Source: Mytilus trossulus (Eukaryota). Taken from it: a stretch of DNA of 64,000 nucleotides. Made by a program: the position numbers and the translations under genes. The notes beneath the pieces are model-generated. The model did not search any database and was not told the origin of the DNA. It worked only from the letters and a program-made list of their open reading frames with translations. The stretch lies in NCBI RefSeq assembly GCF_036588685.1, contig NW_026963290.1, positions 5,332,001-5,396,000 on the forward strand, in the 5' to 3' direction. This document shows positions 7,210-56,394 of this stretch, piece by piece (position 1 is the first letter of the stretch; every line of letters starts with the position of its first letter).

Positions 7210-9303
7210 AAAGACTTCGATTTAAGCAGTGAGGCTACTGAAACAAAACGTGATTTATGAACAAATTAATTATATGAATTGGTAAAGAATATATATAAAG
7301 ACCAGTATGTACCAAGTATTTCTTATACCTATACCAAATCTATTGCAACTAAAATTTTCAATAACAAACACGTTTTGCAGGATCTCGATATTGACGACTT
7401 CAAGTCTAAACCTCATGATTGCACTTGTGCTAGTTCCCAATTCACATATAATCCTGCTGGCCACGTTATTACCGGTGACTTCAACGTTGTTTATAACACT
7501 TCTCTACGAAATGTGTTATCGAAAGGTCCGAAATATCGTGAGCCTTAATCCATCAATTGGAAATACAACTTTAAGATTTTGATGGATTCAGTCGAGAATT
7601 ATGCCAGGTAATGGGCTAAGCGCGAGAAGGAAGACGTAGACACTCTTTCCGAATGGATAAAGGCAGTGAGGTCGTTGATACAAATCAGAATCAAGAAACT
7701 GAATGGGTCTATCAATGCCCATGCTACGTCAATCTTTAAAGACCCAAATGTTGCAAAACATCTATCCTACCTCCATGACAAATATGTTGTTGTCTCCGCA
7801 GACAAAGCCCCAAACAACATCGTTTTTGTGTGTAAAACTCATTACATGAACTGCTTGACAAACGAATTAGGTATTGACAATTCACTTGGAAACTCAACAT
7901 ATACCCTCACGACACTTACCAAAGAGGAAATCTTGGATAATCATAGGTCTGTTCTATGTTCCTTTGGAATTCCAACCAAAGATGAAGAACTGGATCTTCC
8001 ATCACTACATAAGTGTCCTTACAAACAACGGTATATTGCTGGGTCTTCCATGTGCTCCACGAAACATTTTTCTAAATTATTAACATCTATTTTATCAGCA
8101 ATCAAAGAAGGGCTTCAAAGTTATTGTGAAACTACCTTTTCTAGAGGTGTCGTGAATCAAATGTGGATACTTAAAAATTCAAAGGATATTTTAGAGTACA
8201 TACAATCTAACTCTCTTTCATCTTGTAACAGTATTAAACTATTTGACTTTTCTACTATTTACACAAGTATTCCACATTCCAAACTATTGCTTTGCTTCAT
8301 AAAAAAGAATGGCCAAAGTAGATACAAGTATCTTGTATTGGGGAGGGATAAATCCTACTTTGTAAAGGATCACTCTGATTCAAAGAAAAATTTCTCTGAA
8401 ACTGATATTATCAAGATGCTTGAAATCTTGATTGACAACATATTTGTTACGTTCGGAGGACGTGTTTTTCAACAGACTATCTGCATTCCAATGGGAACAA
8501 ACTGTTTCTGTATTATTATGAGGCTGACTTCATGCAGGAACTTCTTAGGAAGAAAGATAAGAAGTTAGCAATATCCTTTACCTTTACTTTCCGCTATATA
8601 GATAATGTTCTTTCACTTAATAATTCCAAATTTGGTGACTATGTGGAACGCATATATCCCATCGAACTAGAGATAAAGGATACAACATATACAGTTAAGT
8701 CGACCTCATATCTTGACTTTCATCTAGAAATTGACAATGAAGGTCGGTTGAAAACAAAACTTTGCGACAAAAGAGATGATTTCAGCGAAAATTGCGAATT
8801 TTCCATTTCTAAGTAGCAACATTCTATCAGCACCTGCATGAGGGGGTATATATATATCCCAATTGATACGATATTCCCGTGCTTGCATTTCCTATCATGA
8901 TTTTCTTGATAGAGGGTTGCTGCTCACAAGAAAGCTATTAAAGCCAAGAGTTCCAAATGGTGAAGTTGAAATCATCCCTTCGTAAATTTTACTGCCGCCA
9001 TCACGAGTTGGTTGACCGTTATGGAATAACCGTTTCACAAATGATATCGGATATGTTCCTTACGTCGTAACTACAATCCCCTTCCTGTTCATGAATGCTC
9101 CCTACCGAATTAGACTATTTACCGTATTTGTTATAACATGAGCAACACGACGTGTGCCACATGTGGAGCAGGATCTGCTTACCCTTCCGGAGCACCTGAG
9201 ATCACCACTAGTTTTTGGTGGGGTTCGTGTTGCTTATTCGTTAGTTTTCTATGTTGTGTCACGTGTACTGTTGTGTGTCTGTTTGTCTGTTTGTTTTGTT
9301 CAT
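7210..9303 (+). mobile_element. Decayed Penelope-like retroelement RT region; its 3' end continues at 15251-15322 after a nested insertion
   Basis: PLE-type RT motifs KGPKYREP, ADKAPNN, FDFSTIYTSIPH, IPMGTNC, FRYIDNV, SYLDFHL across frameshifted ORFs; the 3' tail ttcattttt|agccatggcg is split by the HINE and is seen intact at ~17608-17626. Confidence 0.8.
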
Positions 9304-24204: not shown

Positions 24205-25143
24205 TAGGTCTTTCCACTTTTCCGTGGAAAGACCTATTGAATTTGTTCTGATTATTATTTTTTTTTTTTTTTTTTTTCTTCCGCCTAATTTTTTTTCTTG
24301 CGTAGTATTGATGTTTCAAAAGATGTCGCTTAGATATTTGGAATATGATATCGTATAGTTTATACGCTTTAAAAATTTACAACAACATAACAAAAAACTT
24401 TACGTTGTAAGAGTTATCTCCCCAAACACTGTTTCTCTTGTGGCCACTACTCCTTCGTAACCGTAAAGGATTATGACAAATTTATTTTACCAAATTGCTC
24501 GTTACGTCTTAAAGATTAGGGTATTCATTTGGACCGAAGCTTTACGGAGACTCCATATGAGAGTTATTCCCCCTTTTTCATTTGATTCAAGTGATATGCA
24601 TTTCTAACTAGTAAACCATAAGTGATAGAGACCTAGGGTCCTCAGATTTGAGGTCCTTGGTCCAAAAAAATTAAAATGAGGTCAAGGTCAAAGGTCAAGG
24701 TCATATTCTAAATTTTGATTTTGGCTTATTTTCACTTATTTTCAAATACGTTATGACATATCGACAAATAATTTTTCATAAATTGTTAGTTGCGACATCT
24801 CCTTACTTGTATATTCTGGTTGAAAGGGTGCGCAGACAATAAATGGGAATTTTTGCCCATCTTACATTTAGAATAACGCGTCAAGTGATATTACTCATTA
24901 ACCAAACATATTAAAGACCTAGGGTCTTTTGATTTAAGGTCCTTGGTTTGTGAACTTAAAATTGAGGTCAAGGTCATAGGTTAAAGGACGTTCTAGATTT
25001 TGACCCTTGCTTTAAATTCATATTAATACATCCTAAAGCCATAGGAACTAACATTTTAAACTGATTTTTCATATTTCAATATCAAAATAGAACTTTACTA
25101 GTGGAAAGACCTTCAATTGTTCTCTGAACAATTGGTTTTTAAT
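24205..25143 (+). mobile_element. 939-bp non-autonomous Helentron (HINE/DINE-1-like) element
   Basis: Inserted at T|T with no TSD (caatatt|tatatctag); 5' hairpin TAGGTCTTTCCAC/GTGGAAAGACCTA; 3' subTIR GTGGAAAGACCT (25101-25112) followed by palindrome CAATTGTTC-tct-GAACAATTG and a T-run. Confidence 0.85.
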
Positions 25144-26050: not shown

Positions 26051-27418
26051 GCTTATAAGATTTTCATAAACTCTCTTCTCACTACACTCGAAACCTATCG
26101 CTTAGGTTCTCATATTGGCTCAATCTACGTAGGAATTCCGACAGTCGCAGATGATGTCACCTTAGTTTCAAACTGTCCATACGAAATACAGTCTATGTTA
26201 GATTTACAAACTTTTCATGCTAATAAATTTCGTTATCTTATTAGTAGCCAAAAATCATGTGTATTAAACTATAGATGTGCTGACTCTTTCGACTGGTCTA
26301 TTAATGGTGAAATTTTGGATACTCCGGAAAACGCAGTTCATCTCGGTATTAAACGTGATAAACTTTCCCGTTTAGGCACTAAAGAAGTTGTCCCAGGTCG
26401 CATTCAACTAGCCAGACAGACTGTCTACTCACTGATGGGTGCTGGACTTTATGGACTAAATGGAGTCAACCCTAAGGTTTCACTTCATCTTATCCGCTGC
26501 TACGTGATTCCCAGGCTTTTATATGGACTTGAGGTCATACTGCTTTCAAAAACAGACATTAGTAATATTACAATATATTTTGTGAAACTTTTAAAACGTA
26601 TTCAACATTTACCGGACCGTACAGCAAATGCTGCTGTTCTACTATTAATTGGACAAATTCCTATTGAAGCAGAAATCCACAAAAGAATCCTTGGTATTTT
26701 TAGAAACATTATTGATAATGATAACTCTGTCGAACGTGACTTAGCATTCCGTCAACTTGCAATGAAAACCGAGTCATCAAACAGCTGGTTTCGTAAAGTA
26801 GTTACAATTACAGAATTATATGATCTGCCGTCACCTCATGATCTACTTGTCAACCCTCCTTCAAAGTCAAAATGGAAAAAACTGGTTAACTCCTTAGTAA
26901 ACTATTACTGGATAACTAAACTAAAATCTGAAGCGTCAGAAAAATCATCTTTAAACCTTTTAAACTATACTGATGCTGAATTTGGAAGCATTCATTCTAT
27001 TTGGAATACTTGTGGATCTGAACCTTACTCTACCTTACGTGCCTGTATCAAATCTAAGTTAGCATGTAACACTTATACTCTACAATGTGATAAGTCTAAA
27101 TTTAGTAAACGACAAATTAGTGCAATCTGTCCGCTATGTGGAACTGAGGATGAGAATCGGTTACATTTTATCTTGAGATGCAGTAGTTTAGATAATGTGA
27201 GAAACAGTTTTATACAGAGTCTAAAAACTTTTATTAAAGATGTTGTAACTACTAAACTTTATGATGAACTATTTAGTTCCGAAATCAACACTTTACAGTT
27301 AATTATCGACTGCAGTGTATTTCATTTTCTGTCCAGAGGCGATGTTTTTAAAGTGGAATGTATTACTAGAGGACTATGTTTTAAGTTACATCAGGTGCGA
27401 TCGAATTTATTGAGGTAG
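26051..27418 (+). CDS. Partial ORF2: C-terminal half of reverse transcriptase plus CCHC zinc finger
   Basis: Frame open from the first inserted base: AYKIFIN...GIPTVADDVTL...HLGI...YSLMGAGLYGLNGVNP...CPLC-x8-H-x4-C (track ORF 26195-27418). Confidence 0.85.
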   Translation, partial: AYKIFINSLLTTLETYRLGSHIGSIYVGIPTVADDVTLVSNCPYEIQSMLDLQTFHANKFRYLISSQKSCVLNYRCADSFDWSINGEILDTPENAVHLGIKRDKLSRLGTKEVVPGRIQLARQTVYSLMGAGLYGLNGVNPKVSLHLIRCYVIPRLLYGLEVILLSKTDISNITIYFVKLLKRIQHLPDRTANAAVLLLIGQIPIEAEIHKRILGIFRNIIDNDNSVERDLAFRQLAMKTESSNSWFRKVVTITELYDLPSPHDLLVNPPSKSKWKKLVNSLVNYYWITKLKSEASEKSSLNLLNYTDAEFGSIHSIWNTCGSEPYSTLRACIKSKLACNTYTLQCDKSKFSKRQISAICPLCGTEDENRLHFILRCSSLDNVRNSFIQSLKTFIKDVVTTKLYDELFSSEINTLQLIIDCSVFHFLSRGDVFKVECITRGLCFKLHQVRSNLLR

Positions 27419-27718
27419 TACTAATAAATCAATATCAAATAGCTTAATGAATAAGTGTGCAAATGTGACAATTGATAATTTGAAATGGAGCAACGAACTT
27501 TTTAGAGTCCAATGACTTGCGCTCCAGTTTCGGTCATGTATATATTCATGGGATGTATTCATTCTCGTGTGTAAATAGAGGTGGTGGTTAATGTGTATAA
27601 ACAATCAATACTAGTGCATTGGATTAACTGATAATATATATACGTATGATATTCACACTGAAAAGTGGGTCGTCTGATATAGGCGGAACAGTACAGACTA
27701 AAGTAAAGTAAAGTAAAG
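26051..27718 (+). mobile_element. 5'-truncated RTE-X-like non-LTR retrotransposon
   Basis: TSD TCTAACC (26044-26050 / 27719-27725), (TAAAG)4 tail, uninterrupted RT C-terminal frame. Confidence 0.88.
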
Positions 27719-28699: not shown

Positions 28700-29797
28700 T
28701 CCATGATAAATGATTTGAAATATTCAATATTTATATCTAGACTTACTCTTCCGTGATCTATGGGCAAGTATATACAGGTGCACACTAATAGGCAGAGAAA
28801 AACTAGCATTGTAGACATTATGCAGTTGCTTCTGTTTCATTTTACCTAAGTATGAGACGACACGGTCGATTTTATGTTGATACATCGATTTGTCTTCCTA
28901 TTGTGTTATCTTATCATATTTACTATTTCTGTTTCTAGGAATATATACTGATAGATGAATTTACAAAACACAATTTCCAATTACCTGCAATTTGTGATGA
29001 CGCTAAATAACCATAACGAAACACTTTGCATGTTTTTTTAACGGTCGAATGTTACCGCTAGATATAAGTATACAATTCTGATGTCTGATACTATTCTGTC
29101 GCCATAGCTCAGTCGGTTGACGGCCAGACAGGGAATACCGAGGACCGCAGTTCGAATCTCACAATGGGTTTTTGAATTTGAGAGCGATATTTTTCTCATT
29201 GAACTCAATGTTTTTGACCTGTGCTATAAGCCAGATCAAACGTTCAATTCACATTTCTGAATTTGCCCGTATAGATTTTCAAGTGACAATAACCGTAGGC
29301 GCTAAAACTTTGTTCACCTTTAGTACCCCCGAGCCAAACCTTTGGTAGAAATTATTCATGTTCGACTTCTTGTTATCCGCTATTCAACAATTTATTTTCA
29401 AATAAAGCAGTCCCAATAGATAGTGTTTAAACCATTCAACTGATTGCTTAGTAGGCTTACAAACCAGTGTAACTAATCGAGATGTACTTTATGAAAGTTC
29501 TTAATGCTATCAGCAATAGGGGGGATGAATTGACAGTAAGTGTATTTGAGGCTAACTAGAAGAAACTGATAGCAAAAAAAGTAGCCTTCAGAGAGAGTCG
29601 AACTCTCGACCTCCAGTTTACTAGACTGGCGCTCTTTTTTTTTTTCTCTTGATAAAATTTTATTCAGATAATACATATAAAAAGAATAATCAGGCTATAC
29701 TCCTGAAAATTCACATTATCACAATATAAGCTTGTAAGATTACAACTTCAATCATATATAATATATTCACAATTAACATCACATGATAATTATCACA

Positions 29798-32700
29798 CTA
29801 GAAATCAATTTGAATTTGATTGTCTCTAATAATTAATACTGGATTATTTTCATTATAATACTTTTCAAATAATTGTAGCGCATTGTTGCGTTTATAATGT
29901 TCATAAGCATAGTTCACATTTTTAACAAGAGTAGACTTAAAGTATTGTTCTATGTCTATAATCTTATTTTCTAACATTGCAATATTTCGTCTTTTTACAA
30001 TACAAAATCTTCTTATTGCTAATACACTATTTACAAAATAGTAATTAATATATTTATTTTGTTTTGTCAAACCAAACATACACATGAACTCAAAACTAAG
30101 GTCATTTATATAACTGCCCGAACTCTTATACAAAATATTGTGTAAAAAATTCTTTACAAAATCATTGAAGCGAGTTAACATCGTACACTCTAAAATCAGG
30201 TGATTTAAATTCTCAGGTAGAGTTGAGCAAATAGGACAAAGTGAGTCCTTTGTAATACGGCATTTAAATAGCCTTTCTTTTGTAAATATAATACGGTGAA
30301 AAACTTTAAATGCCACCTCGCGACAATCGCTTTGTAAAAAAGAAAAATTCATGATTTTCTGGATCTTTCTTAGGTCAAAATCTGCGTACATCAAACGCCA
30401 TCGTGATACAGATTTAGGTTCTCTAGAAAGCTTTGATACAAGCATTCGATAATAAAAATTCGTCGTGGATGGAAGTGAACAAATTTGGACGCCATCTTTA
30501 ATCATGGGTTTTAACATAGGAGTTTTACTAACATGCACATTTGCTTCAACTAGCACTTTATACTCATCAGGTATTGTTTCTAACACATTTCTAACTGCAT
30601 GTAACATTTTATTTTCCGAAACTTCCGGAAATTTTTCTAATACAATCTCTTGAATATAACTTTCTTTCAAGAAACCTGGTTTACATTCATATGCGATATC
30701 TTTTATTTTACATACACCTGCTTCAATAAATGTCTTAAGATATAACATTTTATTACCATTTGTAATATTTGGATTTAGAAAAAGCGGAATATCAAAAACA
30801 TTTTCTGAATTAACTTCAATATCTACATTTTCACAAATACTTTGCCATGACAAAATCAGACTTTGATAAAATTCTGGTAATGCATCTATTTTTCTATTTC
30901 GGAGATCACAGAATAAAATTTCAATTCCAAGATTCATGTTTTCAAACTTAGAAAAGAAATAAAGACAAGTTTGTTTCCATAAAGCACAATAGTTTTCATC
31001 CAACAGTCTACTCAAATATTTTAATCTAAAAGCATACATTTTCTGCATAATATCAGGAAAATTCAATCCTCCGTCAACTACTTTATTGATAATAACCTCA
31101 TATGCTACAAGAGGAGGTTTATTATTCCATAAAAATTCTAAACATTTCTTTTTTATAAGTATGCAATACTTTTCAGGTATATTTACAACCATTAATGTAT
31201 ACCACAGTTTACTCATAAGTAAGGCACTAATAACACTTACTCTTCCATGAAGAGTTAAATGCCTCATTTTCCAAAAATTCAGGAGTTTTGTAATTGATTG
31301 TACTTTACCTTCCCAATTCAATTTTTCACATAATGTTTTATTTTTTCCCACCCATATTCCTAATAACTGTAAGACTTCATCACATTCTTTTATTTTCCAA
31401 ATTTTTAAATCATTTGAACAAATTTTCCCTTTTCCAAGTGCTAAAACTTCTGATTTTTCTTTATTCAATTTTGCACCCGATGCTTTTTCGTACAATTCTA
31501 GTACCCGAAATGTTTCACTAACTGAATTTTTGTCCACTAAGGTCAAAGTTGTATCGTCAGCATGTACAAAAACCTTTTCTTCAACATTTGTATTTGGTAT
31601 TACAACACCTCTAATCTCACAATTTTTCTTAATAGCAATACTCAATGGTTCTGCTAACAAAACATATAACAGAGCCGAAATGGGACACCCCTGTTTGACA
31701 GAGTTTTTCAATCTAAAGTATGGAGTCAAAAATCCATTACATTTAACTGAACTAAAAATGTTGGTGTAAAATATTTTTATCCATTTTTTGAATTTATTAC
31801 CAAATCCAAATTTATCCAAAACTGCAAAAAGATACTCGTGTCCAGCTCTGTCAAAAGCTTTTTCTTGATCTAATTTTAATAAATAACATTCTATATCATC
31901 CATTTCTACTAAATCCATAAAATCCCTAACACTAACAACTGTGTCAGATATATCTTTTCCTAGAATACAACAGCTTTGATTTGGTGAAATAACTTTTGGT
32001 AGTACATACTTAAATCTATTTGCCATTACTCTGGCAAGTATTTTGTAGTCAACATTCAACAAGCTAATTGGCCTAAAGTTTTTCAAATCTGATTGATCAC
32101 CTTTGTTTTTAAAAATTATATTTATATTCCCATATCTCATAGATCTAGATAATTCTTCATTTTCCTCAATACTTTGATAAATATAGAGTAATACATGCTT
32201 TAATTCATTGAAAAAATACAAATAAAATTCTGCAGTTATACCATCTGGTCCAGGTGTTTTCCCTTTTTTCATACCTTTTAAGGATTTTTCAATTTCCTCA
32301 ATACTAATTTCATCTTCACACATTTCTACATCTTCATCATCAATTTTTACATTAACATTATTCAATAATTCATCAACTGAATGCATATCAATACTAACAC
32401 AAGAAAACAAATGTTTATAATAATCATGTATAACATCAAGTAAATCATTTGTTTCTGTAACAATTTTCCCATCACAATCTTTTATTTCACTTATCACATT
32501 CTTATTCTGTCGATACTTTTCTAATTTCAAAAAATATGCAGTATTTCTATCACTTTCTAAAGCCCACTGTGACTTTGATCTTAAAATTGCACCTTGACAT
32601 TTGTACGTTTCAATATCTTCTAATTGCGTTTGCAATTCTAAAAAATGTTCACTGTTTATCTGAATACCATTTGCAGATTTTACTGATAATTCTTGAATTT

Positions 32701-33703
32701 TATTCTGCAATTTATAATATTCCCTGTTTAAATCTTTTTGCTTTTCTTTGCCATAAATTTGGCTTAATCTTTTAATTGTAAATTTTAAATTATCCCACCA
32801 AATTAAGGGATTTGACACATAAAAATCTGACCCAATTTCATTTGCAAATAATCTCTTCATTTTATCAATAAATAACTCATCTTGTAAAAATGAATTATTA
32901 AAAACCCACACACCTGGACCTCTTTCTACATTACAAAAATCTATCTTCATGCTGACGATACTATGATCACTAAAACTAGTATCCTTATAATGAATATTCT
33001 TAATACATGATTTTAAATCTAATGACACTAGAAAATAGTCTATTCTGCTTTGGGTTAAAAACCCTTGTACAACCTGTTTTCTAGAAAAAACTTTTGTATT
33101 AACATTTCTATTTCTCCAAATATCATATAAGTCTTTTTCTTGCATAAAAGTACATAAGGATTTTACAGCCTTATCATTACAATGCATGGTTTTACCACTC
33201 TTATCCAAACTTGATAATGTAGTATTAAAATCTCCAGCAACTAATACATATTTTCCTTTACTAATTTTTTGTTTACACTTTAAGAAAAACTCATATCTTT
33301 CATTTACATTATTTGGTGCATATATATTATAAATGTCAATCAATTTATCATTAATTGTCCCTTTTATATGAATAAATCTTCCATTATCATTTTCCACTTC
33401 TACAAAAATGTTTTTTAATTTCTTACTAACAAGAATAGCAACACCTTGACGGTTATTACCACTATTACTATAAAAAATATCTCCATCCCAAATAGTTTTA
33501 TCTCTTTTAATTCTTTCTACAAACAAATCATTCCAAAATGTTTCTTGTAAACATATAATATCATAAAATCTTTCATTACACAATGAAAAAATACAATTCC
33601 TCTTATTGCTATCACAAAGTCCGTTACAATTAAGACTTATAACATTAAACATAGCCATTACTATATAAAATATATTGAATATTATATAATATTTACAATC
33701 CAT
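29798..33703 (-). CDS. Tx1-like ORF2p: APE endonuclease, reverse transcriptase and C-terminal CCHC (1301 aa, intact)
   Basis: SLNCNGL, LQET, IYAPN, GDFN, SRIDY, SDH (APE); PGPDG, FRPISLLNVDYKIL, LDQEKAFD, QGCPIS, HADD (RT); CPIC-x8-H-x4-C. Confidence 0.95.
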   Translation of the reverse strand: MDCKYYIIFNIFYIVMAMFNVISLNCNGLCDSNKRNCIFSLCNERFYDIICLQETFWNDLFVERIKRDKTIWDGDIFYSNSGNNRQGVAILVSKKLKNIFVEVENDNGRFIHIKGTINDKLIDIYNIYAPNNVNERYEFFLKCKQKISKGKYVLVAGDFNTTLSSLDKSGKTMHCNDKAVKSLCTFMQEKDLYDIWRNRNVNTKVFSRKQVVQGFLTQSRIDYFLVSLDLKSCIKNIHYKDTSFSDHSIVSMKIDFCNVERGPGVWVFNNSFLQDELFIDKMKRLFANEIGSDFYVSNPLIWWDNLKFTIKRLSQIYGKEKQKDLNREYYKLQNKIQELSVKSANGIQINSEHFLELQTQLEDIETYKCQGAILRSKSQWALESDRNTAYFLKLEKYRQNKNVISEIKDCDGKIVTETNDLLDVIHDYYKHLFSCVSIDMHSVDELLNNVNVKIDDEDVEMCEDEISIEEIEKSLKGMKKGKTPGPDGITAEFYLYFFNELKHVLLYIYQSIEENEELSRSMRYGNINIIFKNKGDQSDLKNFRPISLLNVDYKILARVMANRFKYVLPKVISPNQSCCILGKDISDTVVSVRDFMDLVEMDDIECYLLKLDQEKAFDRAGHEYLFAVLDKFGFGNKFKKWIKIFYTNIFSSVKCNGFLTPYFRLKNSVKQGCPISALLYVLLAEPLSIAIKKNCEIRGVVIPNTNVEEKVFVHADDTTLTLVDKNSVSETFRVLELYEKASGAKLNKEKSEVLALGKGKICSNDLKIWKIKECDEVLQLLGIWVGKNKTLCEKLNWEGKVQSITKLLNFWKMRHLTLHGRVSVISALLMSKLWYTLMVVNIPEKYCILIKKKCLEFLWNNKPPLVAYEVIINKVVDGGLNFPDIMQKMYAFRLKYLSRLLDENYCALWKQTCLYFFSKFENMNLGIEILFCDLRNRKIDALPEFYQSLILSWQSICENVDIEVNSENVFDIPLFLNPNITNGNKMLYLKTFIEAGVCKIKDIAYECKPGFLKESYIQEIVLEKFPEVSENKMLHAVRNVLETIPDEYKVLVEANVHVSKTPMLKPMIKDGVQICSLPSTTNFYYRMLVSKLSREPKSVSRWRLMYADFDLRKIQKIMNFSFLQSDCREVAFKVFHRIIFTKERLFKCRITKDSLCPICSTLPENLNHLILECTMLTRFNDFVKNFLHNILYKSSGSYINDLSFEFMCMFGLTKQNKYINYYFVNSVLAIRRFCIVKRRNIAMLENKIIDIEQYFKSTLVKNVNYAYEHYKRNNALQLFEKYYNENNPVLIIRDNQIQIDF

Positions 33704-33705
33704 TT

Positions 33706-35337
33706 TTATTTGTTTCTATTTTTTTTTTGATGTGCCAACATAGCAGCCTTTACATTAACCTTAACTTTCAATGACTTTCGTCTTGCATTTTTTTTAAATA
33801 TATTTTTGCATTTGTCTTCTACACTAGCCCACTCACTTTCTTCATCAGCCAATGGGTCAGTGTCCATACTTATTTCATCTAATTCACCAAATACACCATC
33901 ATCTCCTCCCTGGCTGCATTTTTGTTCCAGAGAGGGGATGTTACTAATTTTCTCATCATTAACATTTGTTTCACATGAAACATTTTCATTCATGATTTCA
34001 TTTGTACTTAACAAAACATTACATTTACTAATATTGCTACTAACAGTTACAATATGTCCTTCTGATATCTGCTCACTGTCTTTAATCGTCATCTCGGTCG
34101 CGATCTTTGTCTTTACACCATTGTCGGTCGCGATCTTTGTCTGCTCACTATTGTCAGTCGCGATCTTTGTCTTTTCACCATTTTCGGACGCGTTATCAAC
34201 GGTATCTGTTACATCATCTGCCATGGCTTCATCAGCGTCTGTATATTCATCATCATCATCTTCATATCCATTACCAATACCATCACCAATTATTCCATCT
34301 CCATTACCATTACCATTATCTTTAACGTCATCTTCATTCCAATCCTCACCATTAGCTTCTATATCATCACACATGATATCACTTGTGTGTACATCTGCAA
34401 CAACTTTTACCACCTTTGACTTTTTCACATCATCACTGGTTCCCTGTTCCGAACTTATGACTGAGGGACCAACATCTGACGTATTCCCACTAATCAAGTC
34501 ATTTTCACTTTCTTTTAATTCTGTATTGTTTTCTTCACTACTGGTGATAATTTCTTGATATTTTCTTTTGTGGTCCGAAACTCTGCCCCAAGGTGTTTTT
34601 CTTTTTCCTTCGGGTATATGACCAAATCCTTCTCCGAAATAACGCTTTCTCGTTAAACAATCGCAATCACTGTATGGCCTTAGGCAACTCTTACATTTAT
34701 TCTCTAAACAGTTTTTACTAATATGTCCTTGTTGACCACATTTAAAACATTTAAATTCTGGACAATCTTTGTATAAATGTTCAGCACTATAACAACCCGA
34801 ACAAACTTTGACCTGGTCATTATGAATAACTCTATAATATGCTGTTTCCTTCCCGCTAACTGTAAATTTCATAGAATACGGTATTGAGGCAAGTGTAGGT
34901 GGTAATTTTACTTTAAAAACCCTAGTACCATCATATACATTCGATCTACTGCTCATTTTTCTTTTCCTAATGTCAGTTACTATTTCAACACCCATTCTAT
35001 CAAATCTATCAATTATTTCTTCATCTGTTACGTACATGCTCATATTGAAAATTGACACAATTCTAAATACTGATACTAGTTCATTTACACTAATGGATTT
35101 ACCTTGTATAAATAAACCGTCTCCTGATATTTCTCCTACATTTCTCCTTTACCGCATTACTACTTCATAATTGTTATCATTCTTGGGAACACACGCTAAC
35201 ACGGATCCAACACCACATTTCTTTTCAATTTCATCTATCACTAATTCTGGGGTAATCACTTTAGTACTGCCAACATTCACACGAACAGTTTGTTCCTTTG
35301 AATAATTGTCATCCAAAGGGTACGTTTTGTCACCCAT
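33706..35337 (-). CDS. Tx1-like ORF1p (gag-like, CCHC zinc knuckles), interrupted by one in-frame TAA at 35149-35151
   Basis: Track ORFs 35149-35349 and 33706-35058 are in the same frame with 30 sense codons between; knuckles CSGCYSAEHLYKDC and CFKCGQQGHISKNC; acidic low-complexity C-terminus. Confidence 0.88.
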
Positions 35338-36447
35338 CCTGGGTGACAAAACAAAGTCTTTTTCAACAAAAAAGTTGAAAAAATCAAACGTAATTAAGGT
35401 ATATTATCACATTCTGACACAAAATATACAAATTCACATATACGATGACTTGGAAAAACACAGTTTTTGAATTAGATTGACTCTCTCGATATAAACACCT
35501 GTTTACTCTTTCATAGGTCAACCGGAAGTCCAGACTGGCGCTCTAACCAACTGAGCTATGAAGGCTCCATGATAAATTATTTGAAATATTCAATATTTAT
35601 ATCTAGACTTACTCTTCCGTGATCTATGGGCAAGTATATACAGGTGCACACTAATAGGCAGAGAAAAACTAGCATTGTAGACATTATGCAGTTGCTTCTG
35701 TTTCATTTTACCTAAGTATGAGACGACACGGTCGATTTTATGTTGATACATCGATTTGTCTTCCTATTGTGTTATCTTATCATATTTACTATTTCTGTTT
35801 CTAGGAATATATACTGATAGATGAATTTACAAAACAGAATTTCCAATTACCTGCAATTTGTGATGACGCTAAATAACCATAACGAAACACTTTGCATGTT
35901 TTTTGACGGTCGAATGTTACCGCTAGATATAAGTATACAATTCTGATGTCTGAAACTATTCTGTCGCCATAGCTCAGTCGGTTGACGGCCAGACAGGGAA
36001 TACCGAGGACCGCAGTTCGAATCTCACAATGGGTTTTTGAATTTGAGAGCGATATTTTTCTCATTGAACTCAATGTTTTTGACCTGTGCTATAAGCCAGA
36101 TCAAACGTTCAATTCACATTTCTGAATTTGCCCGTATAGATTTTCAAGTGACAATAACCGTAGGCGCTAAAACTTTGTTCACCTTTAGTACCCCCGAGCC
36201 AAACCTTTGGTAGAAATTATTCATGTTCGACTTCTTGTTATCCGCTATTCAACAATTTATTTTCAAATAAAGCAGTCCCAATAGATAGTGTTTAAACCAT
36301 TCAACTGATTGCTTAGTAGGCTTACAAACCAGTGTAACTAATCGAGATGTACTTTATGAAAGTTCTTAATGCTATCAGCAATAGGGGGGATGAATTGACA
36401 GTAAGTGTATTTGAGGCTAACTAGAAGAAACTGATAGCAAAAAAAGT

Positions 36448-43213: not shown

Positions 43214-44095
43214 TCCATGATAAATGATTTGAAATATTCAATATTTATATCTAGACTTACTCTTCCGTGATCTATGGGCAAGTATATACAGGTGCACACT
43301 AATAGGCAGAGAAAAACTAGCATTGTAGACATTATGCAGTTGCTTCTGTTTCATTTTACCTAAGTATGAGACGACACGGTCGATTTTATGTTGATACATC
43401 GATTTGTCTTCCTATTGTGTTATCTTATCATATTTACTATTTCTGTTTCTAGGAATATATACTGATAGATGAATTTACAAAACACAATTTCCAATTACCT
43501 GCAATTTGTGATGACGCTAAATAACCATAACGAAACACTTTGCATGTTTTTTGACGGTCGAATGTTACCGCTAGATATAAGTATACAATTCTGATGTCTG
43601 AAACTATTCTGTCGCCATAGCTCAGTCGGTTGACGGCCAGACAGGGAATACCGAGGACCGCAGTTCGAATCTCACAATGGGTTTTTGAATTTGAGAGCGA
43701 TATTTTTCTCATTGAACTCAATGTTTTTGACCTGTGCTATAAGCCAGATCAAACGTTCAATTCACATTTCTGAATTTGCCCGTATAGATTTTCAAGTGAC
43801 AATAACCGTAGGCGCTAAAACTTTGTTCACCTTTAGTACCCCCGAGCCAAACCTTTGGTAGAAATTATTCATGTTCGACTTCTTGTTATCCGCTATTCAA
43901 CAATTTATTTTCAAATAAAGCAGTCCCAATAGATAGTGTTTAAACCATTCAACTGATTGCTTAGTAGGCTTACAAACCAGTGTAACTAATCGAGATGTAC
44001 TTTATGAAAGTTCTTAATGCTATCAGCAATAGGGGGGATGAATTGACAGTAAGTGTATTTGAGGCTAACTAGAAGAAACTGATAGCAAAAAAAGT

Positions 44096-44169: not shown

Positions 44170-44602
44170 TCCATGATAAATGATTTGAAATATTCAATAT
44201 TTATATCTAGACTTACTCTTCCGTGATCTATGGGCAAGTATATACAGGTGCACACTAATAGGCAGAGAAAAACTAGCATTGTAGACATTATGCAGTTGCT
44301 TCTGTTTCATTTTACCTAAGTATGAGACGACACGGTCGATTTTATGTTGATACATCGATTTGTCTTCCTATTGTGTTATCTTATCATATTTACTATTTCT
44401 GTTTCTAGGAATATATACTGATAGATGAATTTACAAAACACAATTTCCAATTACCTGCAATTTGTGATGACGCTAAATAACCATAACGAAACACTTTGCA
44501 TGTTTTTTGACGGTCGAATGTTACCGCTAGATATAAGTATACAATTCTGATGTCTGAAACTATTCTGTCGCCATAGCTCAGTCGGTTGACGGCCAGACAG
44601 GG

Positions 44603-46255
44603 GAAAAAGTCGAGTACACCTTTAACGGATATAGACGTATATTTTGCTTGTCCTGTTTTGAAGTTATATTTTTCTATTGGATTTGGATATTACCAGCCGG
44701 AATAGTTAAAAACGCTTTCATAACAGTAATGTAAGTTTTATTACTGACATTTTTGCAAAAATAATGCCTTAATTTGATATTTGAGTGAACTTTACTTCTT
44801 CATGTGTAAATATTGAGGTACGAAGAAGGGATATTGTAATGGAGAAATTACCAAAACCATTAGTTGCGCTTATTAACAGTATAGTAGACGAATATGAACA
44901 TTTTAATTGGAATTCGAATTACTTAGGTGATAAAATGAGAATTTCGTTGATTTGGACCAGAGGTGAATATGTGAATACAAACAAAGGTGTAAAACACAAG
45001 TCGAAATCAAGTAAAGCCAGGGACACTAAACGGTTAAAAACGTGGCAAGATAAGAAAGAAAATTTACATAACGACGATGATATAGATACTAGTGATATAG
45101 ATACTGATAGTTCAGAGGAAGATATGAGCGAATCAAGTGATGAAAATCAACAAATCGACAAGGTAGATATCCCGCTGGTAACCCCCGAAAAAGTAAACAT
45201 TAGACCGGTTACGAAAATTACTCACCCGGTACGAGTGTCTATTAATAAGTCAATCAATAAAAACAATCATGAATCGCCACCAGAAAAAAGAGTGTGTCGT
45301 AGTTCGATATATGGAACGAGTGTGGAAGTTCAAAAACAAAGTGTACACACAAATATAAAGGAATGTGAACATGTAGAAATAGATGACGAAATAAAAACAG
45401 TCGCATCTAAATCGATAATAACCGGGAACAGTCCATGTAATGACAGCCACTATCAGAAAATAGTGTTTAATAGACGATCAGAAGGTGATCTCGTGTTAGG
45501 AAAAATTAAAAAGAGAGATACAATAGTTATTTGTAATACAACAAAGAAGAAAATAAATCATGTGAATCTTGATACGAACAAATCAGGTTATGAAGACACA
45601 ATGTATTATATTAATAGATATAAAGATTTGAGAAAAACGGACGATGAAGAAATAAGTAGTTATGTTTTTCATGTTCCGAAATTAGAAAGATACGCGGAAG
45701 TTCACAAACTTTGTCCGTGGTGTTTTTTGGAATGAACAGTTATTTGGGGAAAAACCAAGATCCGTTTCATGCGTGAATTAACTCTTTAATTATATTGTTT
45801 ATTATGTATCAAAACTTAGGTTTGGAAACCAACCTATTTTTGTTAGGACTTAAAAATATTAGTTAAATATAACATTTGCGTATGCTAACATTTTGTGTAT
45901 TTTTTTCTTGTAATAGTTCAAAGGCTATTTTATTGTTTTATATATAAAAAAGAAAATATAAAAAAAAGGAAGTATATTCATACAATTAGTCTATCATAGG
46001 ATAGATTTATTAAAAAAGTGACATTAATATAATCAGTTTGGTATATGAGAATTTGATGACTTAGAGTAAATGAGCGATTTGTTGAATTGAGTAAATGAGC
46101 GAGCTGTTGACTTAGAGTAAATGAGCGATTTGTTGTTGTTGTTTTTTTCTTTTCAGGGAAAAATGACAATAATTGACATAAATGTTTGATATATGTGTAA
46201 TTGTAATCTGTGATATGTATATAGAAGTGAGATTATAATAAAGATAAAAAAAAAA
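44603..46255 (+). mobile_element. 1,653-bp RT-less, protein-coding retroposed element inserted in the tRNA-like gene (copy 1)
   Basis: 15-bp TSD GACGGCCAGACAGGG (44588-44602 / 46256-46270), AATAAA 46237-46242, A10 tail, single ORF. Confidence 0.9.
44839..45735 (+). CDS. Hypothetical protein, 298 aa from the first ATG (316 aa from GTG at 44785), no recognisable domain
   Basis: Long intact ORF in very AT-rich DNA; basic KHKSKSSKARDTKR segment, acidic D/E/S tract, C-terminal CPWC. Confidence 0.75.
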   Translation: MEKLPKPLVALINSIVDEYEHFNWNSNYLGDKMRISLIWTRGEYVNTNKGVKHKSKSSKARDTKRLKTWQDKKENLHNDDDIDTSDIDTDSSEEDMSESSDENQQIDKVDIPLVTPEKVNIRPVTKITHPVRVSINKSINKNNHESPPEKRVCRSSIYGTSVEVQKQSVHTNIKECEHVEIDDEIKTVASKSIITGNSPCNDSHYQKIVFNRRSEGDLVLGKIKKRDTIVICNTTKKKINHVNLDTNKSGYEDTMYYINRYKDLRKTDDEEISSYVFHVPKLERYAEVHKLCPWCFLE

Positions 46256-46719
46256 GACGGCCAGACAGGGAATACCGAGGACCGCAGTTCGAATCTCACA
46301 ATGGGTTTTTGAATTTGAGAGCGATATTTTTCTCATTGAACTCAATGTTTTTGACCTGTGCTATAAGCCAGATCAAACGTTCAATTCACATTTCTGAATT
46401 TGCCCGTATAGATTTTCAAGTGACAATAACCGTAGGCGCTAAAACTTTGTTCACCTTTAGTACCCCCGAGCCAAACCTTTGGTAGAAATTATTCATGTTC
46501 GACTTCTTGTTATCCGCTATTCAACAATTTATTTTCAAATAAAGCAGTCCCAATAGATAGTGTTTAAACCATTCAACTGATTGCTTAGTAGGCTTACAAA
46601 CCAGTGTAACTAATCGAGATGTACTTTATGAAAGTTCTTAATGCTATCAGCAATAGGGGGGATGAATTGACAGTAAGTGTATTTGAGGCTAACTAGAAGA
46701 AACTGATAGCAAAAAAAGT

Positions 46720-48705: not shown

Positions 48706-49138
48706 TCCATGATAAATGATTTGAAATATTCAATATTTATATCTAGACTTACTCTTCCGTGATCTATGGGCAAGTATATACAGGTGCACACTAATAGGCA
48801 GAGAAAAACTAGCATTGTAGACATTATGCAGTTGCTTCTGTTTCATTTTACCTAAGTATGAGACGACACGGTCGATTTTATGTTGATACATCGATTTGTC
48901 TTCCTATTGTGTTATCTTATCATATTTACTATTTCTGTTTCTAGGAATATATACTGATAGATGAATTTACAAAACACAATTTCCAATTACCTGCAATTTG
49001 TGATGACGCTAAATAACCATAACGAAACACTTTGCATGTTTTTTGACGGTCGAATGTTACCGCTAGATATAAGTATACAATTCTGATGTCTGAAACTATT
49101 CTGTCGCCATAGCTCAGTCGGTTGACGGCCAGACAGGG

Positions 49139-50791
49139 GAAAAAGTCGAGTACACCTTTAACGGATATAGACGTATATTTTGCTTGTCCTGTTTTGAAGT
49201 TATATTTTTCTATTGGATTTGGATATTACCAGCCGGAATAGTTAAAAACGCTTTCATAACAGTAATGTAAGTTTTATTACTGACATTTTTGCAAAAATAA
49301 TGCCTTAATTTGATATTTGAGTGAACTTTACTTCTTCATGTGTAAATATTGAGGTACGAAGAAGGGATATTGTAATGGAGAAATTACCAAAACCATTAGT
49401 TGCGCTTATTAACAGTATAGTAGACGAATATGAACATTTTAATTGGAATTCGAATTACTTAGGTGATAAAATGAGAATTTCGTTGATTTGGACCAGAGGT
49501 GAATATGTGAATACAAACAAAGGTGTAAAACACAAGTCGAAATCAAGTAAAGCCAGGGACACTAAACGGTTAAAAACGTGGCAAGATAAGAAAGAAAATT
49601 TACATAACGACGATGATATAGATACTAGTGATATAGATACTGATAGTTCAGAGGAAGATATGAGCGAATCAAGTGATGAAAATCAACAAATCGACAAGGT
49701 AGATATCCCGCTGGTAACCCCCGAAAAAGTAAACATTAGACCGGTTACGAAAATTACTCACCCGGTACGAGTGTCTATTAATAAGTCAATCAATAAAAAC
49801 AATCATGAATCGCCACCAGAAAAAAGAGTGTGTCGTAGTTCGATATATGGAACGAGTGTGGAAGTTCAAAAACAAAGTGTACACACAAATATAAAGGAAT
49901 GTGAACATGTAGAAATAGATGACGAAATAAAAACAGTCGCATCTAAATCGATAATAACCGGGAACAGTCCATGTAATGACAGCCACTATCAGAAAATAGT
50001 GTTTAATAGACGATCAGAAGGTGATCTCGTGTTAGGAAAAATTAAAAAGAGAGATACAATAGTTATTTGTAATACAACAAAGAAGAAAATAAATCATGTG
50101 AATCTTGATACGAACAAATCAGGTTATGAAGACACAATGTATTATATTAATAGATATAAAGATTTGAGAAAAACGGACGATGAAGAAATAAGTAGTTATG
50201 TTTTTCATGTTCCGAAATTAGAAAGATACGCGGAAGTTCACAAACTTTGTCCGTGGTGTTTTTTGGAATGAACAGTTATTTGGGGAAAAACCAAGATCCG
50301 TTTCATGCGTGAATTAACTCTTTAATTATATTGTTTATTATGTATCAAAACTTAGGTTTGGAAACCAACCTATTTTTGTTAGGACTTAAAAATATTAGTT
50401 AAATATAACATTTGCGTATGCTAACATTTTGTGTATTTTTTTCTTGTAATAGTTCAAAGGCTATTTTATTGTTTTATATATAAAAAAGAAAATATAAAAA
50501 AAAGGAAGTATATTCATACAATTAGTCTATCATAGGATAGATTTATTAAAAAAGTGACATTAATATAATCAGTTTGGTATATGAGAATTTGATGACTTAG
50601 AGTAAATGAGCGATTTGTTGAATTGAGTAAATGAGCGAGCTGTTGACTTAGAGTAAATGAGCGATTTGTTGTTGTTGTTTTTTTCTTTTCAGGGAAAAAT
50701 GACAATAATTGACATAAATGTTTGATATATGTGTAATTGTAATCTGTGATATGTATATAGAAGTGAGATTATAATAAAGATAAAAAAAAAA
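49139..50791 (+). mobile_element. 1,653-bp RT-less, protein-coding retroposed element (copy 2)
   Basis: Same TSD (49124-49138 / 50792-50806), same A10 tail, offset 4,536 bp from copy 1. Confidence 0.9.
49375..50271 (+). CDS. Hypothetical protein identical to 44839-45735
   Basis: Identical translation in the ORF track (49321-50271). Confidence 0.75.
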   Translation: MEKLPKPLVALINSIVDEYEHFNWNSNYLGDKMRISLIWTRGEYVNTNKGVKHKSKSSKARDTKRLKTWQDKKENLHNDDDIDTSDIDTDSSEEDMSESSDENQQIDKVDIPLVTPEKVNIRPVTKITHPVRVSINKSINKNNHESPPEKRVCRSSIYGTSVEVQKQSVHTNIKECEHVEIDDEIKTVASKSIITGNSPCNDSHYQKIVFNRRSEGDLVLGKIKKRDTIVICNTTKKKINHVNLDTNKSGYEDTMYYINRYKDLRKTDDEEISSYVFHVPKLERYAEVHKLCPWCFLE

Positions 50792-51255
50792 GACGGCCAG
50801 ACAGGGAATACCGAGGACCGCAGTTCGAATCTCACAATGGGTTTTTGAATTTGAGAGCGATATTTTTCTCATTGAACTCAATGTTTTTGACCTGTGCTAT
50901 AAGCCAGATCAAACGTTCAATTCACATTTCTGAATTTGCCCGTATAGATTTTCAAGTGACAATAACCGTAGGCGCTAAAACTTTGTTCACCTTTAGTACC
51001 CCCGAGCCAAACCTTTGGTAGAAATTATTCATGTTCGACTTCTTGTTATCCGCTATTCAACAATTTATTTTCAAATAAAGCAGTCCCAATAGATAGTGTT
51101 TAAACCATTCAACTGATTGCTTAGTAGGCTTACAAACCAGTGTAACTAATCGAGATGTACTTTATGAAAGTTCTTAATGCTATCAGCAATAGGGGGGATG
51201 AATTGACAGTAAGTGTATTTGAGGCTAACTAGAAGAAACTGATAGCAAAAAAAGT

Positions 51256-54391: not shown

Positions 54392-55089
54392 CTTCCTATT
54401 GTGTTATCTTATCATATTTACTATTTCTGTTTCTAGGAATATATACTGATAGATGAATTTACAAAACAGAATTTCCAATTACCTGCAATTTGTGATGACG
54501 CTAAATAACCATAACGAAACACTTTGCATGTTTTTTGACGGTCGAATGTTACCGCTAGATATAAGTATACAATTCTGATGTCTGAAACTATTCTGTCGCC
54601 ATAGCTCAGTCGGTTGACGGCCAGACAGGGAATACCGAGGACCGCAGTTCGAATCTCACAATGGGTTTTTGAATTTGAGAGCGATATTTTTCTCATTGAA
54701 CTCAATGTTTTTGACCTGTGCTATAAGCCAGATCAAACGTCTTCCTATTGTGTTATCTTATCATATTTACTATTTCTGTTTCTAGGAATATATACTGATA
54801 GATGAATTTACAAAACAGAATTTCCAATTACCTGCAATTTGTGATGACGCTAAATAACCATAACGAAACACTTTGCATGTTTTTTGACGGTCGAATGTTA
54901 CCGCTAGATATAAGTATACAATTCTGATGTCTGAAACTATTCTGTCGCCATAGCTCAGTCGGTTGACGGCCAGACAGGGAATACCGAGGACCGCAGTTCG
55001 AATCTCACAATGGGTTTTTGAATTTGAGAGCGATATTTTTCTCATTGAACTCAATGTTTTTGACCTGTGCTATAAGCCAGATCAAACGT
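54392..55089. repeat. 349-bp internal tandem duplication containing the tRNA-like element
   Basis: Junction gatcaaacGT|cttcctattg at 54740 with 2-bp microhomology. Confidence 0.9.
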
Positions 55090-55696: not shown

Positions 55697-56394
55697 CTTC
55701 CTATTGTGTTATCTTATCATATTTACTATTTCTGTTTCTAGGAATATATACTGATAGATGAATTTACAAAACAGAATTTCCAATTACCTGCAATTTGTGA
55801 TGACGCTAAATAACCATAACGAAACACTTTGCATGTTTTTTGACGGTCGAATGTTACCGCTAGATATAAGTATACAATTCTGATGTCTGAAACTATTCTG
55901 TCGCCATAGCTCAGTCGGTTGACGGCCAGACAGGGAATACCGAGGACCGCAGTTCGAATCTCACAATGGGTTTTTGAATTTGAGAGCGATATTTTTCTCA
56001 TTGAACTCAATGTGTTTGACCTGTGCTATAAGCCAGATCAAACGTCTTCCTATTGTGTTATCTTATCATATTTACTATTTCTGTTTCTAGGAATATATAC
56101 TGATAGATGAATTTACAAAACAGAATTTCCAATTACCTGCAATTTGTGATGACGCTAAATAACCATAACGAAACACTTTGCATGTTTTTTGACGGTCGAA
56201 TGTTACCGCTAGATATAAGTATACAATTCTGATGTCTGAAACTATTCTGTCGCCATAGCTCAGTCGGTTGACGGCCAGACAGGGAATACCGAGGACCGCA
56301 GTTCGAATCTCACAATGGGTTTTTGAATTTGAGAGCGATATTTTTCTCATTGAACTCAATGTTTTTGACCTGTGCTATAAGCCAGATCAAACGT
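55697..56394. repeat. Second copy of the 349-bp internal tandem duplication
   Basis: Same junction at 56045. Confidence 0.9.

Follow-up and report, generated by a model that had tools for sequence, protein, structure and literature searches.

What is a 1.65-kb segment of DNA that encodes one protein and no reverse transcriptase (RT), and how did it come to lie inside a tRNA-derived gene? The question is raised by a window of 64,000 nucleotides from Mytilus trossulus (contig NW_026963290.1, positions 5,332,001 to 5,396,000; positions in the window are counted from its first letter). The sequence comparisons described below make it very likely that this segment belongs to a family of protein-coding, non-autonomous retroposons riding on Tx1-like long interspersed nuclear elements (LINEs) that are specific for tRNA genes and 5S ribosomal DNA (rDNA). 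No published description of this family or of its helper LINEs was found in the literature (Repbase was outside the scope of that search).

The element occupies positions 44603-46255 on the plus strand (1,653 bp, a full-length copy of subfamily A as defined below) and is flanked by two copies of a 15-bp target site duplication (TSD), gacggccagacaggg, at 44588-44602 and 46256-46270. Its 5' untranslated region (UTR, 44603-44838) opens with (G)A5 followed by GTCGAGTACACC, a terminal motif that is kept in subfamilies A to D. The open reading frame (ORF, 44839-45735) codes for 298 amino acids plus stop when counted from the ATG, or 316 codons when counted from an upstream GTG, and all the remaining ORFs of the element are shorter than 80 amino acids. 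The 3' UTR (45736-46245) closes with a conserved tail module (46145-46245) that is homologous to the 3' end of one clade of Tx1-like LINEs and contains an AATAAA signal (46237-46242), followed by GAT and a tail of ten A (46246-46255). No RT, endonuclease or other domain was detected by Pfam in the single ORF. The length, AATAAA, A10 tail, 15-bp TSD and lone ORF without RT or endonuclease had all been noted in a sequence-only reading of the window, and each was found here. That reading described the first copy correctly and missed a second, 100% identical one at 49139-50791 (plus strand; ORF at 49375-50271), which is flanked by the same TSD (49124-49138 and 50792-50806).

The surroundings of both copies are repetitive. 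From 19012 onward the window is filled by a tandem array of 956-bp units, in each of which a minus-strand tRNA-Thr(AGT) gene is paired with a tRNA-derived partner gene on the plus strand (e.g., 43613-43683). This partner gene retains box A, box B and a T5 terminator, and neither ARAGORN nor the Rfam tRNA model calls it as a tRNA. One such gene is the target of the element. Its 5' part, with box A (TAGCTCAGTCGG) and the left TSD at its end, lies at 44570-44602, and its 3' part, with box B (GTTCGAATC) and the T5 terminator, at 46256-46310 (both on the plus strand). Alignment to a clean 956-bp unit places the interruption at unit positions 509/495, which corresponds to the 15-bp duplication. Since a block of 4,536 bp (the element plus three units) is repeated with one mismatch and carries the second copy, the latter derives from array duplication and not from an independent insertion. 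The two copies of the window are thus the product of one insertion event, the second having arisen by unequal crossing-over in the array.

The assembly (1.3 Gb in 541 contigs), searched at both the DNA and the protein level, contains at least four subfamilies (A/A', B, C and D) with protein identities of 18-100% among them. Copies of subfamily A (1.65 kb, ORF of 298 amino acids) have 97-100% DNA identity to the window copy and those of A' (ca. 1.6-1.66 kb, also 298 amino acids) 89-91%. The values decrease to ca. 69% for subfamily C (1.56 kb, 289-292 amino acids) and ca. 67% for subfamily B (1.53-1.55 kb, 281-289 amino acids), and in subfamily D (1.75 kb, ca. 313 amino acids) the DNA is alignable only at both ends and the protein identity is 18-25%. 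A general plan is recognizable throughout, i.e., a total size of 1.5-1.75 kb, a 5' UTR of ca. 235 nt that opens with the conserved motif GTCGAGTGCACC, an ORF of 281-313 amino acids and a 3' UTR of ca. 0.4-0.5 kb ending in the conserved tail of ca. 100 nt, AATAAAGAT and about ten A. The conserved tail block occurs 108 times in the genome and 0 times in the control. The terminal motif ATAATAAAGAT followed by at least eight A has 173 exact matches versus 4 in the control; about 105 of the 173 continue into the 3' part of a tRNA, a tRNA-like gene or 5S, about 14 resemble unrelated minisatellites and many others are array repeats. A generic A8+GAGC pattern was dropped because its matches were no commoner than in the control. 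On C14 (68.09-68.15 Mb) there are about 36 tandem copies with a period of 1,703 bp, in each of which a tRNA-Asp unit contains a 5'-truncated element of subfamily C, so that copy numbers are inflated by array amplification; array repeats of the element were also found on C3, C10, C112 and C19. Named protein homologues came only from Mytilus galloprovincialis, M. edulis and M. coruscus, and the family appears to be restricted to Mytilus as judged from named database entries only.

We examined 29 insertion events after collapsing array duplicates. About 22 of them are located in tRNA genes, 5S rDNA or tRNA-like genes, and these differ in TSD, 5' junction or tRNA species and have one register in common, at the border of the D-loop and the D-stem (nt 21/22), with ca. 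16 tRNA types used. The empty sites that were rebuilt are recognized by ARAGORN as intact tRNA genes (Gln-TTG, Leu-TAG, Val-TAC, Ile-AAT, Thr-CGT, Phe-GAA and Lys-TTT), and in every rebuilt tRNA site the TSD starts at tRNA nt 21-23. Further copies are found in Glu-CTC, Lys-CTT, His-GTG, Met-CAT and 5S rDNA. Less secure are the census flanks of 9-15 nt, which we take to belong to Ala-TGC, Asp-GTC, Trp-CCA, Pro and Ser-type tRNAs. The size of the TSD varies widely, from 0-1 bp (L032) through 12-16 and 35-70 bp up to ca. 240 bp (L010), and the 5' junctions have 1-7 extra bases. Several copies are 5' truncated (L015, L026, L028 and those of the tRNA-Asp array on C14), and two that at first had no clear TSD (L032 and L034) turned out to be tRNA-associated retrocopies. 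The sequence-only reading had expected flanks in tRNA D-loops together with 5' truncations, and had named as contrary outcomes a single processed-mRNA insertion or copies at random sites; the genome-wide search returned diverged subfamilies with a common target register and truncated members. Insertions can also be nested or adjacent within tRNA arrays. On C5, a subfamily-D-like copy starts (from ca. 225 in locus L043, C5:66952888-66953587) about 25 bp past the end of a tRNA-Gln gene, directly behind a LINE 3' junction.

LINEs with the same target register are present in the genome, one of them in the window itself. This is a full-length element with apurinic/apyrimidinic endonuclease (APE) and RT (29636-35531, minus strand) inserted in a tRNA-Thr(AGT) gene. 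Pfam identifies zf-CCHC in its ORF1 (33706-35058, minus strand) and Exo_endo_phos, RVT_1 and zf-RVT in its ORF2 (29798-33703, minus strand). Its TSD copies of 12-13 bp, (A)GAGCGCCAGTCT, are at 29623-29635 and 35532-35544, and it sits after ..GGTTA of tRNA-Thr, i.e., between nt 21 and 22 in the standard tRNA numbering. Its relatives, many of them intact, comprise about eight near-identical copies and several families at 43-45% ORF2 identity. Among 12 LINE 3' ends that were fetched, 9 or 10 are at the same tRNA register, in Gln, two Thr types, Lys-TTT, Glu, Ile and (L048) an intron-bearing tRNA of uncertain type; that of L041 is in 5S rDNA, and the sites of L040 and L042 are not identifiable as tRNA. 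The partner LINEs, with APE endonuclease, RT and a C-terminal zinc motif plus a CCHC knuckle in ORF1, are designated Tx1-like by their architecture and target specificity alone, the names of their homologues being uninformative.

The 3' junctions of LINEs and element are identical to the nucleotide in six targets (Thr-CGT, Ile, Lys-TTT, Gln, Glu and 5S). Both the junction in tRNA-Thr and the register common to LINE and element had been given correctly by the sequence-only reading. In the 5S case, a LINE (L041, C1:26289296-26289995) and a subfamily-B element (L019, on C442) occupy the same rDNA position, with the tail followed by ccggttctcgtccg in both, which indicates that 5S-specific LINEs exist in this genome and would also move the element. 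Poly(A) junctions were sampled at Thr-CGT and Gln sites, and all 19 carried either a LINE tail or the tail of this family; no other mRNA was found at them. This argues that the machinery is selective and that the element family passes its filter. Since single LINE families were found in different tRNA species, recognition would be of tRNA genes in general. The box A segment is all that the non-canonical target gene of the window has in common with true tRNAs, which suggests that this segment, or factors bound there, is the feature recognized, and not the whole tRNA.

Comparison of the termini allowed us to propose which LINEs are involved. Subfamilies A and D align at an identity of 0.3-0.45, i.e., noise; only the 50 nt at the 5' end (0.60) and the 100 nt at the 3' end (0.64-0.84) rise above it. 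Over the whole family, the first ca. 20 and the last ca. 100 nt are the best-conserved parts, and the tail module is 80-88% identical across subfamilies with a protein identity as low as 18-25%. All subfamilies start with GTCGAGTG(C/G)ACC (as GTCGAGTACACC in the subfamily A of the window) and end with ..CTGTGATATGTA.ATA..ATAATAAAGAT(A)n. The LINE families L042-L049 end in AATAAAGAT(A)n, identical to the element terminus. This ending is missing from the window LINE, the tail of which ends in ..CAAGAG(A)n, and from families L038-L041. In gap-tolerant local alignments scored against mononucleotide shuffles, the tail of subfamily D matched LINE L045 with a z of 10.1 (0 of 300 shuffles as high) and element tails matched LINEs L046-49 and L042 with z values of 4-5.5; the same alignment gave no similarity to the window LINE or to L038-L041. 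Because the tail is shared with LINEs of the L042-L049 type, the main helpers, and the most likely driver of the element, would be these related families ending in AATAAAGAT(A)n and not the LINE family of the window. The sequence-only reading had seen no extended homology to the Tx1 element and proposed to align and fold the 3' UTRs of both. The first statement is right for the window LINE, and the element is nevertheless partly LINE-like at its 3' end (clade of L045-L049 and L042). The alignment gave, correspondingly, no match to the window LINE and a significant one to the related clade, and the folding provided no support for a conserved structure in the tail (RNAalifold, -0.3 kcal/mol). 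As a separate observation, the conserved tail opens, at 46120-46150 and the equivalent positions of all the subfamilies, with a polypyrimidine run and CAG|G that resemble a splice acceptor, and a comparable TTTTCAG|G precedes the tail of the window LINE by about 60 nt.

Nearly all full-length copies have an intact ORF. The ratio of nonsynonymous to synonymous substitution rates (dN/dS) is 0.19-0.39 between subfamilies and ca. 0.35-1.7 among members of the youngest subfamilies, which differ at few positions. The combination is consistent with master lineages under selection whose daughter copies evolve neutrally, and by this measure the ORF is under purifying selection along the master lineages. 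A profile search of 1.84 billion representative proteins retrieved 62 relatives, all of them stand-alone and of no more than 325 amino acids. Family alignment and AlphaFold model together describe an N-terminal helix plus beta-hairpin (residues 6-40) and an acidic disordered linker (residues 79-199); between them, a basic motif, K-S-K-S-x3-R-D-x-K-R (KHKSKS..RD.KR in the window copy), runs into a helix (residues 56-75). The model also predicts a C-terminal domain of four strands and three helices with a per-residue confidence (pLDDT) of >90, and both the N- and the C-terminal domains are conserved in the family alignment. A putative zinc site (C200, H204, H241 and a C-terminal CxxC) was rejected as a family feature, since it is not conserved in distant members. 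Structural and profile matches were discarded too: one in PDB by sequence profile with an E of 0.14 (chance), weak PWWP/Tudor-like rows in Foldseek (best E of 0.25) and a polo-box in VIA-align with two models (best Z of 4.0). The search of the ESM Atlas with the element protein gave no usable match.

The origin of this ORF is where the first alternative has to be considered, namely that the element is an internal-deletion derivative of a Tx1-like LINE, comparable to HAL1, and its ORF a highly diverged ORF1. This alternative concerns origin and is compatible with mobilization in trans. The ORF does occupy the place of ORF1, directly after a 5' UTR of ca. 235 nt, and the 3' tail is homologous to that of a LINE clade. 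There are also weak co-linear similarities at the 5' end, TCGAATGCACC at the LINE 5' end in L037 versus TCGAGTGCACC, and TGGACGTGT, which lies as far from the 5' end in subfamily D as in the L057 LINE, but they are not significant against shuffles. The proteins themselves speak against such a descent. BLASTP of the element protein against two LINE ORF1s gave nothing (E > 0.1), hhalign of the family profile against the ORF1 alignment gave a probability of 0.2%, the zf-CCHC knuckles of the LINE ORF1 are not found in the element protein, and the predicted folds of the two proteins differ. By these comparisons the ORF is not a relative of ORF1, and we regard the deletion-derivative origin as unlikely.

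A second alternative is that the copies are retrocopies of an ordinary family of intronless, highly expressed host genes, the mRNAs of which were picked up by chance by the tRNA-specific LINEs, with selection acting on the parents and not on the copies. A dN/dS below 1 between subfamilies would also be expected of copies drawn from a host parent that was itself evolving, the protein has no domain related to transposable elements in Pfam, and its homologues are annotated as hypothetical proteins in Mytilus gene sets. On the other hand, no parent locus could be found. The search for an intron-bearing parent, which the sequence-only reading had called for, found none (in this genome, with part of the copies inspected); all the genome matches to the protein stay within one frame, and an A tail together with either a TSD or a tRNA junction was present in all the full-length copies inspected. 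A split arrangement was seen in one copy, on C5 (21.29 Mb), which was rejected as an intron-bearing parent since its gaps are a 3.3-kb transposon with terminal inverted repeats (TIRs) and an insertion of ca. 435 bp, both showing an overlap of 4-5 bp, and since it ends in a tail of its own and is flanked by a 15-bp TSD. At this locus (L031, C5:21289000-21298999), the TIRs of the 3.3-kb element start with GAAGTGGGACATTAAA, and it is nested together with the ca. 435-bp insertion in an old subfamily-A copy. A partial match on C7 (L035) was discarded as an old, stop-riddled fragment. Besides, at least five co-existing lineages with young copies would require five intronless parents sharing the 5' start and the 3' tail, the tail is homologous to a LINE tail, and the 19 sampled tRNA junctions showed no other mRNA. 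Chance retrocopying of host genes is therefore, in our judgment, unlikely. That copy number and tRNA association stem mainly from array amplification of a few chance insertions, without target specificity, finds some backing in the single event behind the window copies and in the array repeats on C14 (the ca. 36 copies) and on C3, C10, C112 and C19, but is contradicted by the ca. 22 distinct events left after collapsing the arrays, at the same register in ca. 16 tRNA types and 5S, and has a negligible probability.

The reading we favor is a retroposon family riding on LINEs, and it largely bears out the sequence-only reading, which had proposed a cargo-carrying satellite element mobilized by this or a related Tx1 ORF2p. 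Such a family would work as follows. A polyadenylated RNA of the element would be made, probably by RNA polymerase (Pol) II. Runs of T4-T7 within the element start at its nt 40, so that Pol III read-through from the tRNA promoter would stop early; transcription over the full length must then rely on Pol II or on an internal promoter. ARAGORN found no tRNA within the element and there was no Rfam family at E <= 0.1; by these criteria the element is not a short interspersed nuclear element (SINE), since it has no Pol III head derived from tRNA, 5S or 7SL. Its RNA would be converted into DNA by target-primed reverse transcription (TPRT), the enzyme being the ORF2 protein (ORF2p, with APE endonuclease and RT) of Tx1-like LINE families in the same genome. 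These proteins would nick tRNA genes at the D-loop/D-stem border (5S rDNA in the case of one family) and would recognize the element RNA by its 3' tail, homologous to the tail of one LINE clade. Imprecise cleavage of the second strand would produce TSDs from 0 to >200 bp, and a few untemplated bases could be added at the 5' junction. Given the purifying selection on the ORF, the protein is probably needed for the propagation of the element itself, for instance by standing in for ORF1p in packaging the element RNA and capturing ORF2p. A more specific version, which is possible and which we put forward tentatively, is that this non-ORF1 protein, with two small folded domains and an acidic linker, captures the ORF2p of several LINE lineages specific for tRNA genes and 5S, making the element a hyperparasitic retroposon.

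Several points weigh against this reading. Seven of the 29 events (L006, L007, L008, L012, L051, L053 and the C5 copy) are outside tRNA genes, and as a partial trend the A tails are longer in three of the non-tRNA copies (26-28) than at tRNA sites (9-14). The long-tailed copies may come from a second, less specific mobilizing machinery. The tail homology to LINEs is short (ca. 45-70 nt), AT-rich and with an indel, and was scored against mononucleotide shuffles alone, and in comparisons of the 5' UTR with LINE 5' ends most z values stayed below 3-4 relative to shuffles, which is not significant. Pfam, PDB, Foldseek and VIA provided no functional clue for the protein. Finally, the copies fetched are a part of those detected, so the copy census is incomplete, and the LINE candidates scored were 36 of 9,346.

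As a rule, non-autonomous riders of LINEs either have no coding capacity (SINEs, SVA) or encode the ORF1 of the LINE itself (HAL1, HeT-A). HAL1 of mammals and HeT-A of Drosophila are RT-less, protein-coding poly(A) retroelements that use a LINE RT in trans and persist as families, and in this lifestyle they resemble the Mytilus family. Their proteins, however, are homologues of the ORF1/Gag of the helper LINE, whereas the Mytilus protein has no detectable relation to LINE ORF1, so that of the analogy with both drawn in the sequence-only reading the lifestyle stands and the kinship falls. Mentions of HAL1 occur in PMC4494074 and PMC5753468. Processed pseudogenes and retrogenes made by L1, and SVA, are also Pol II poly(A) RNAs copied in trans by a LINE RT, with TSDs and 5' truncation, but they do not have a LINE-derived tail and retrogenes come from an intron-bearing parent. 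The Mytilus family differs in having no parent that could be found, conserved terminal cis sequences, several persisting lineages and an ORF under selection. The nearest precedent for the targeting argument is SINEU of crocodilians, in which the target preference shared with Tx1-Mar LINEs was taken as an argument for mobilization in trans (Kojima 2015, PMC4494074). There too, the non-autonomous retroposon has the same unusual target preference as a Tx1 LINE group with target specificity, and oligo-T runs make transcription by Pol II probable (PMC4494074). In contrast, SINEU is short and non-coding, with a head derived from small nuclear RNA (snRNA) and a Mariner transposon as target (PMC4494074), whereas the Mytilus family has 1.5-1.75 kb, a conserved protein and tRNA genes plus 5S rDNA as targets. 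Target-specific non-LTR elements in small RNA genes include Keno, of the Tx1 clade (U2 snRNA), NeSL-1_TV (tRNA-Pro), and LIN15_SM and LIN25_SM (tRNA-Arg and tRNA-Glu) (PMC4494074, PMC4640811). Nucleotide-precise insertion in small multicopy RNA genes, viewed as a safe-haven strategy, is common to them and to the Mytilus elements, but the four named here are all autonomous, and NeSL-1_TV, LIN15_SM and LIN25_SM have a restriction-like endonuclease and use one tRNA species each (PMC4494074, PMC4640811). The Mytilus LINEs are of the APE type and use many tRNA species at one register, with the element as a non-autonomous rider. Dada elements insert at a fixed position inside tRNA and snRNA genes as well, but are DNA transposons with a DDE transposase and TIRs, without RNA intermediate, tail or TPRT (PMC3706591, PMC8869645).

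Other insertions were found in the window. At 26051-27718 (plus strand) there is a 5'-truncated LINE of a different kind, with an ORF (26195-27418) that has a weak zf-RVT match and a tail of TAAAG repeats. It is inserted antisense in the D-arm of a tRNA-Thr gene with a 7-bp TSD (tctaacc), and may represent a second, unrelated lineage aiming at the same part of the tRNA gene. A 913-bp insertion in the array spacer (24227-25139) with terminal inverted repeats GGTCTTTCCAC ... GTGGAAAGACC is probably a non-autonomous DNA transposon. Two array units have 1,305 bp instead of 956 (54739-55089 and 56044-56394); they were rejected as insertions, since unit positions 269-619 are doubled internally. Upstream of the array, two ORFs (5651-6649 and 7666-8568), one of them with a weak zf-RVT match, are probably remnants of another LINE.

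If the hyperparasite reading is true, a site-specific LINE system brings a foreign gene, itself under selection, into tRNA gene (tDNA) arrays. A rider that has kept an unrelated, selected protein across deep lineages poses the question of what a retroposon needs beyond ORF2p and a matching tail. The system would be tractable, since a single-nucleotide insertion site in many tRNA genes eases scoring, the element is short, and the helper LINEs are intact and young. APE-type LINEs that use many tRNA species at one register beside box A would be of relevance for safe-harbor gene delivery, and the same LINEs for the evolution of tDNA arrays in bivalves.

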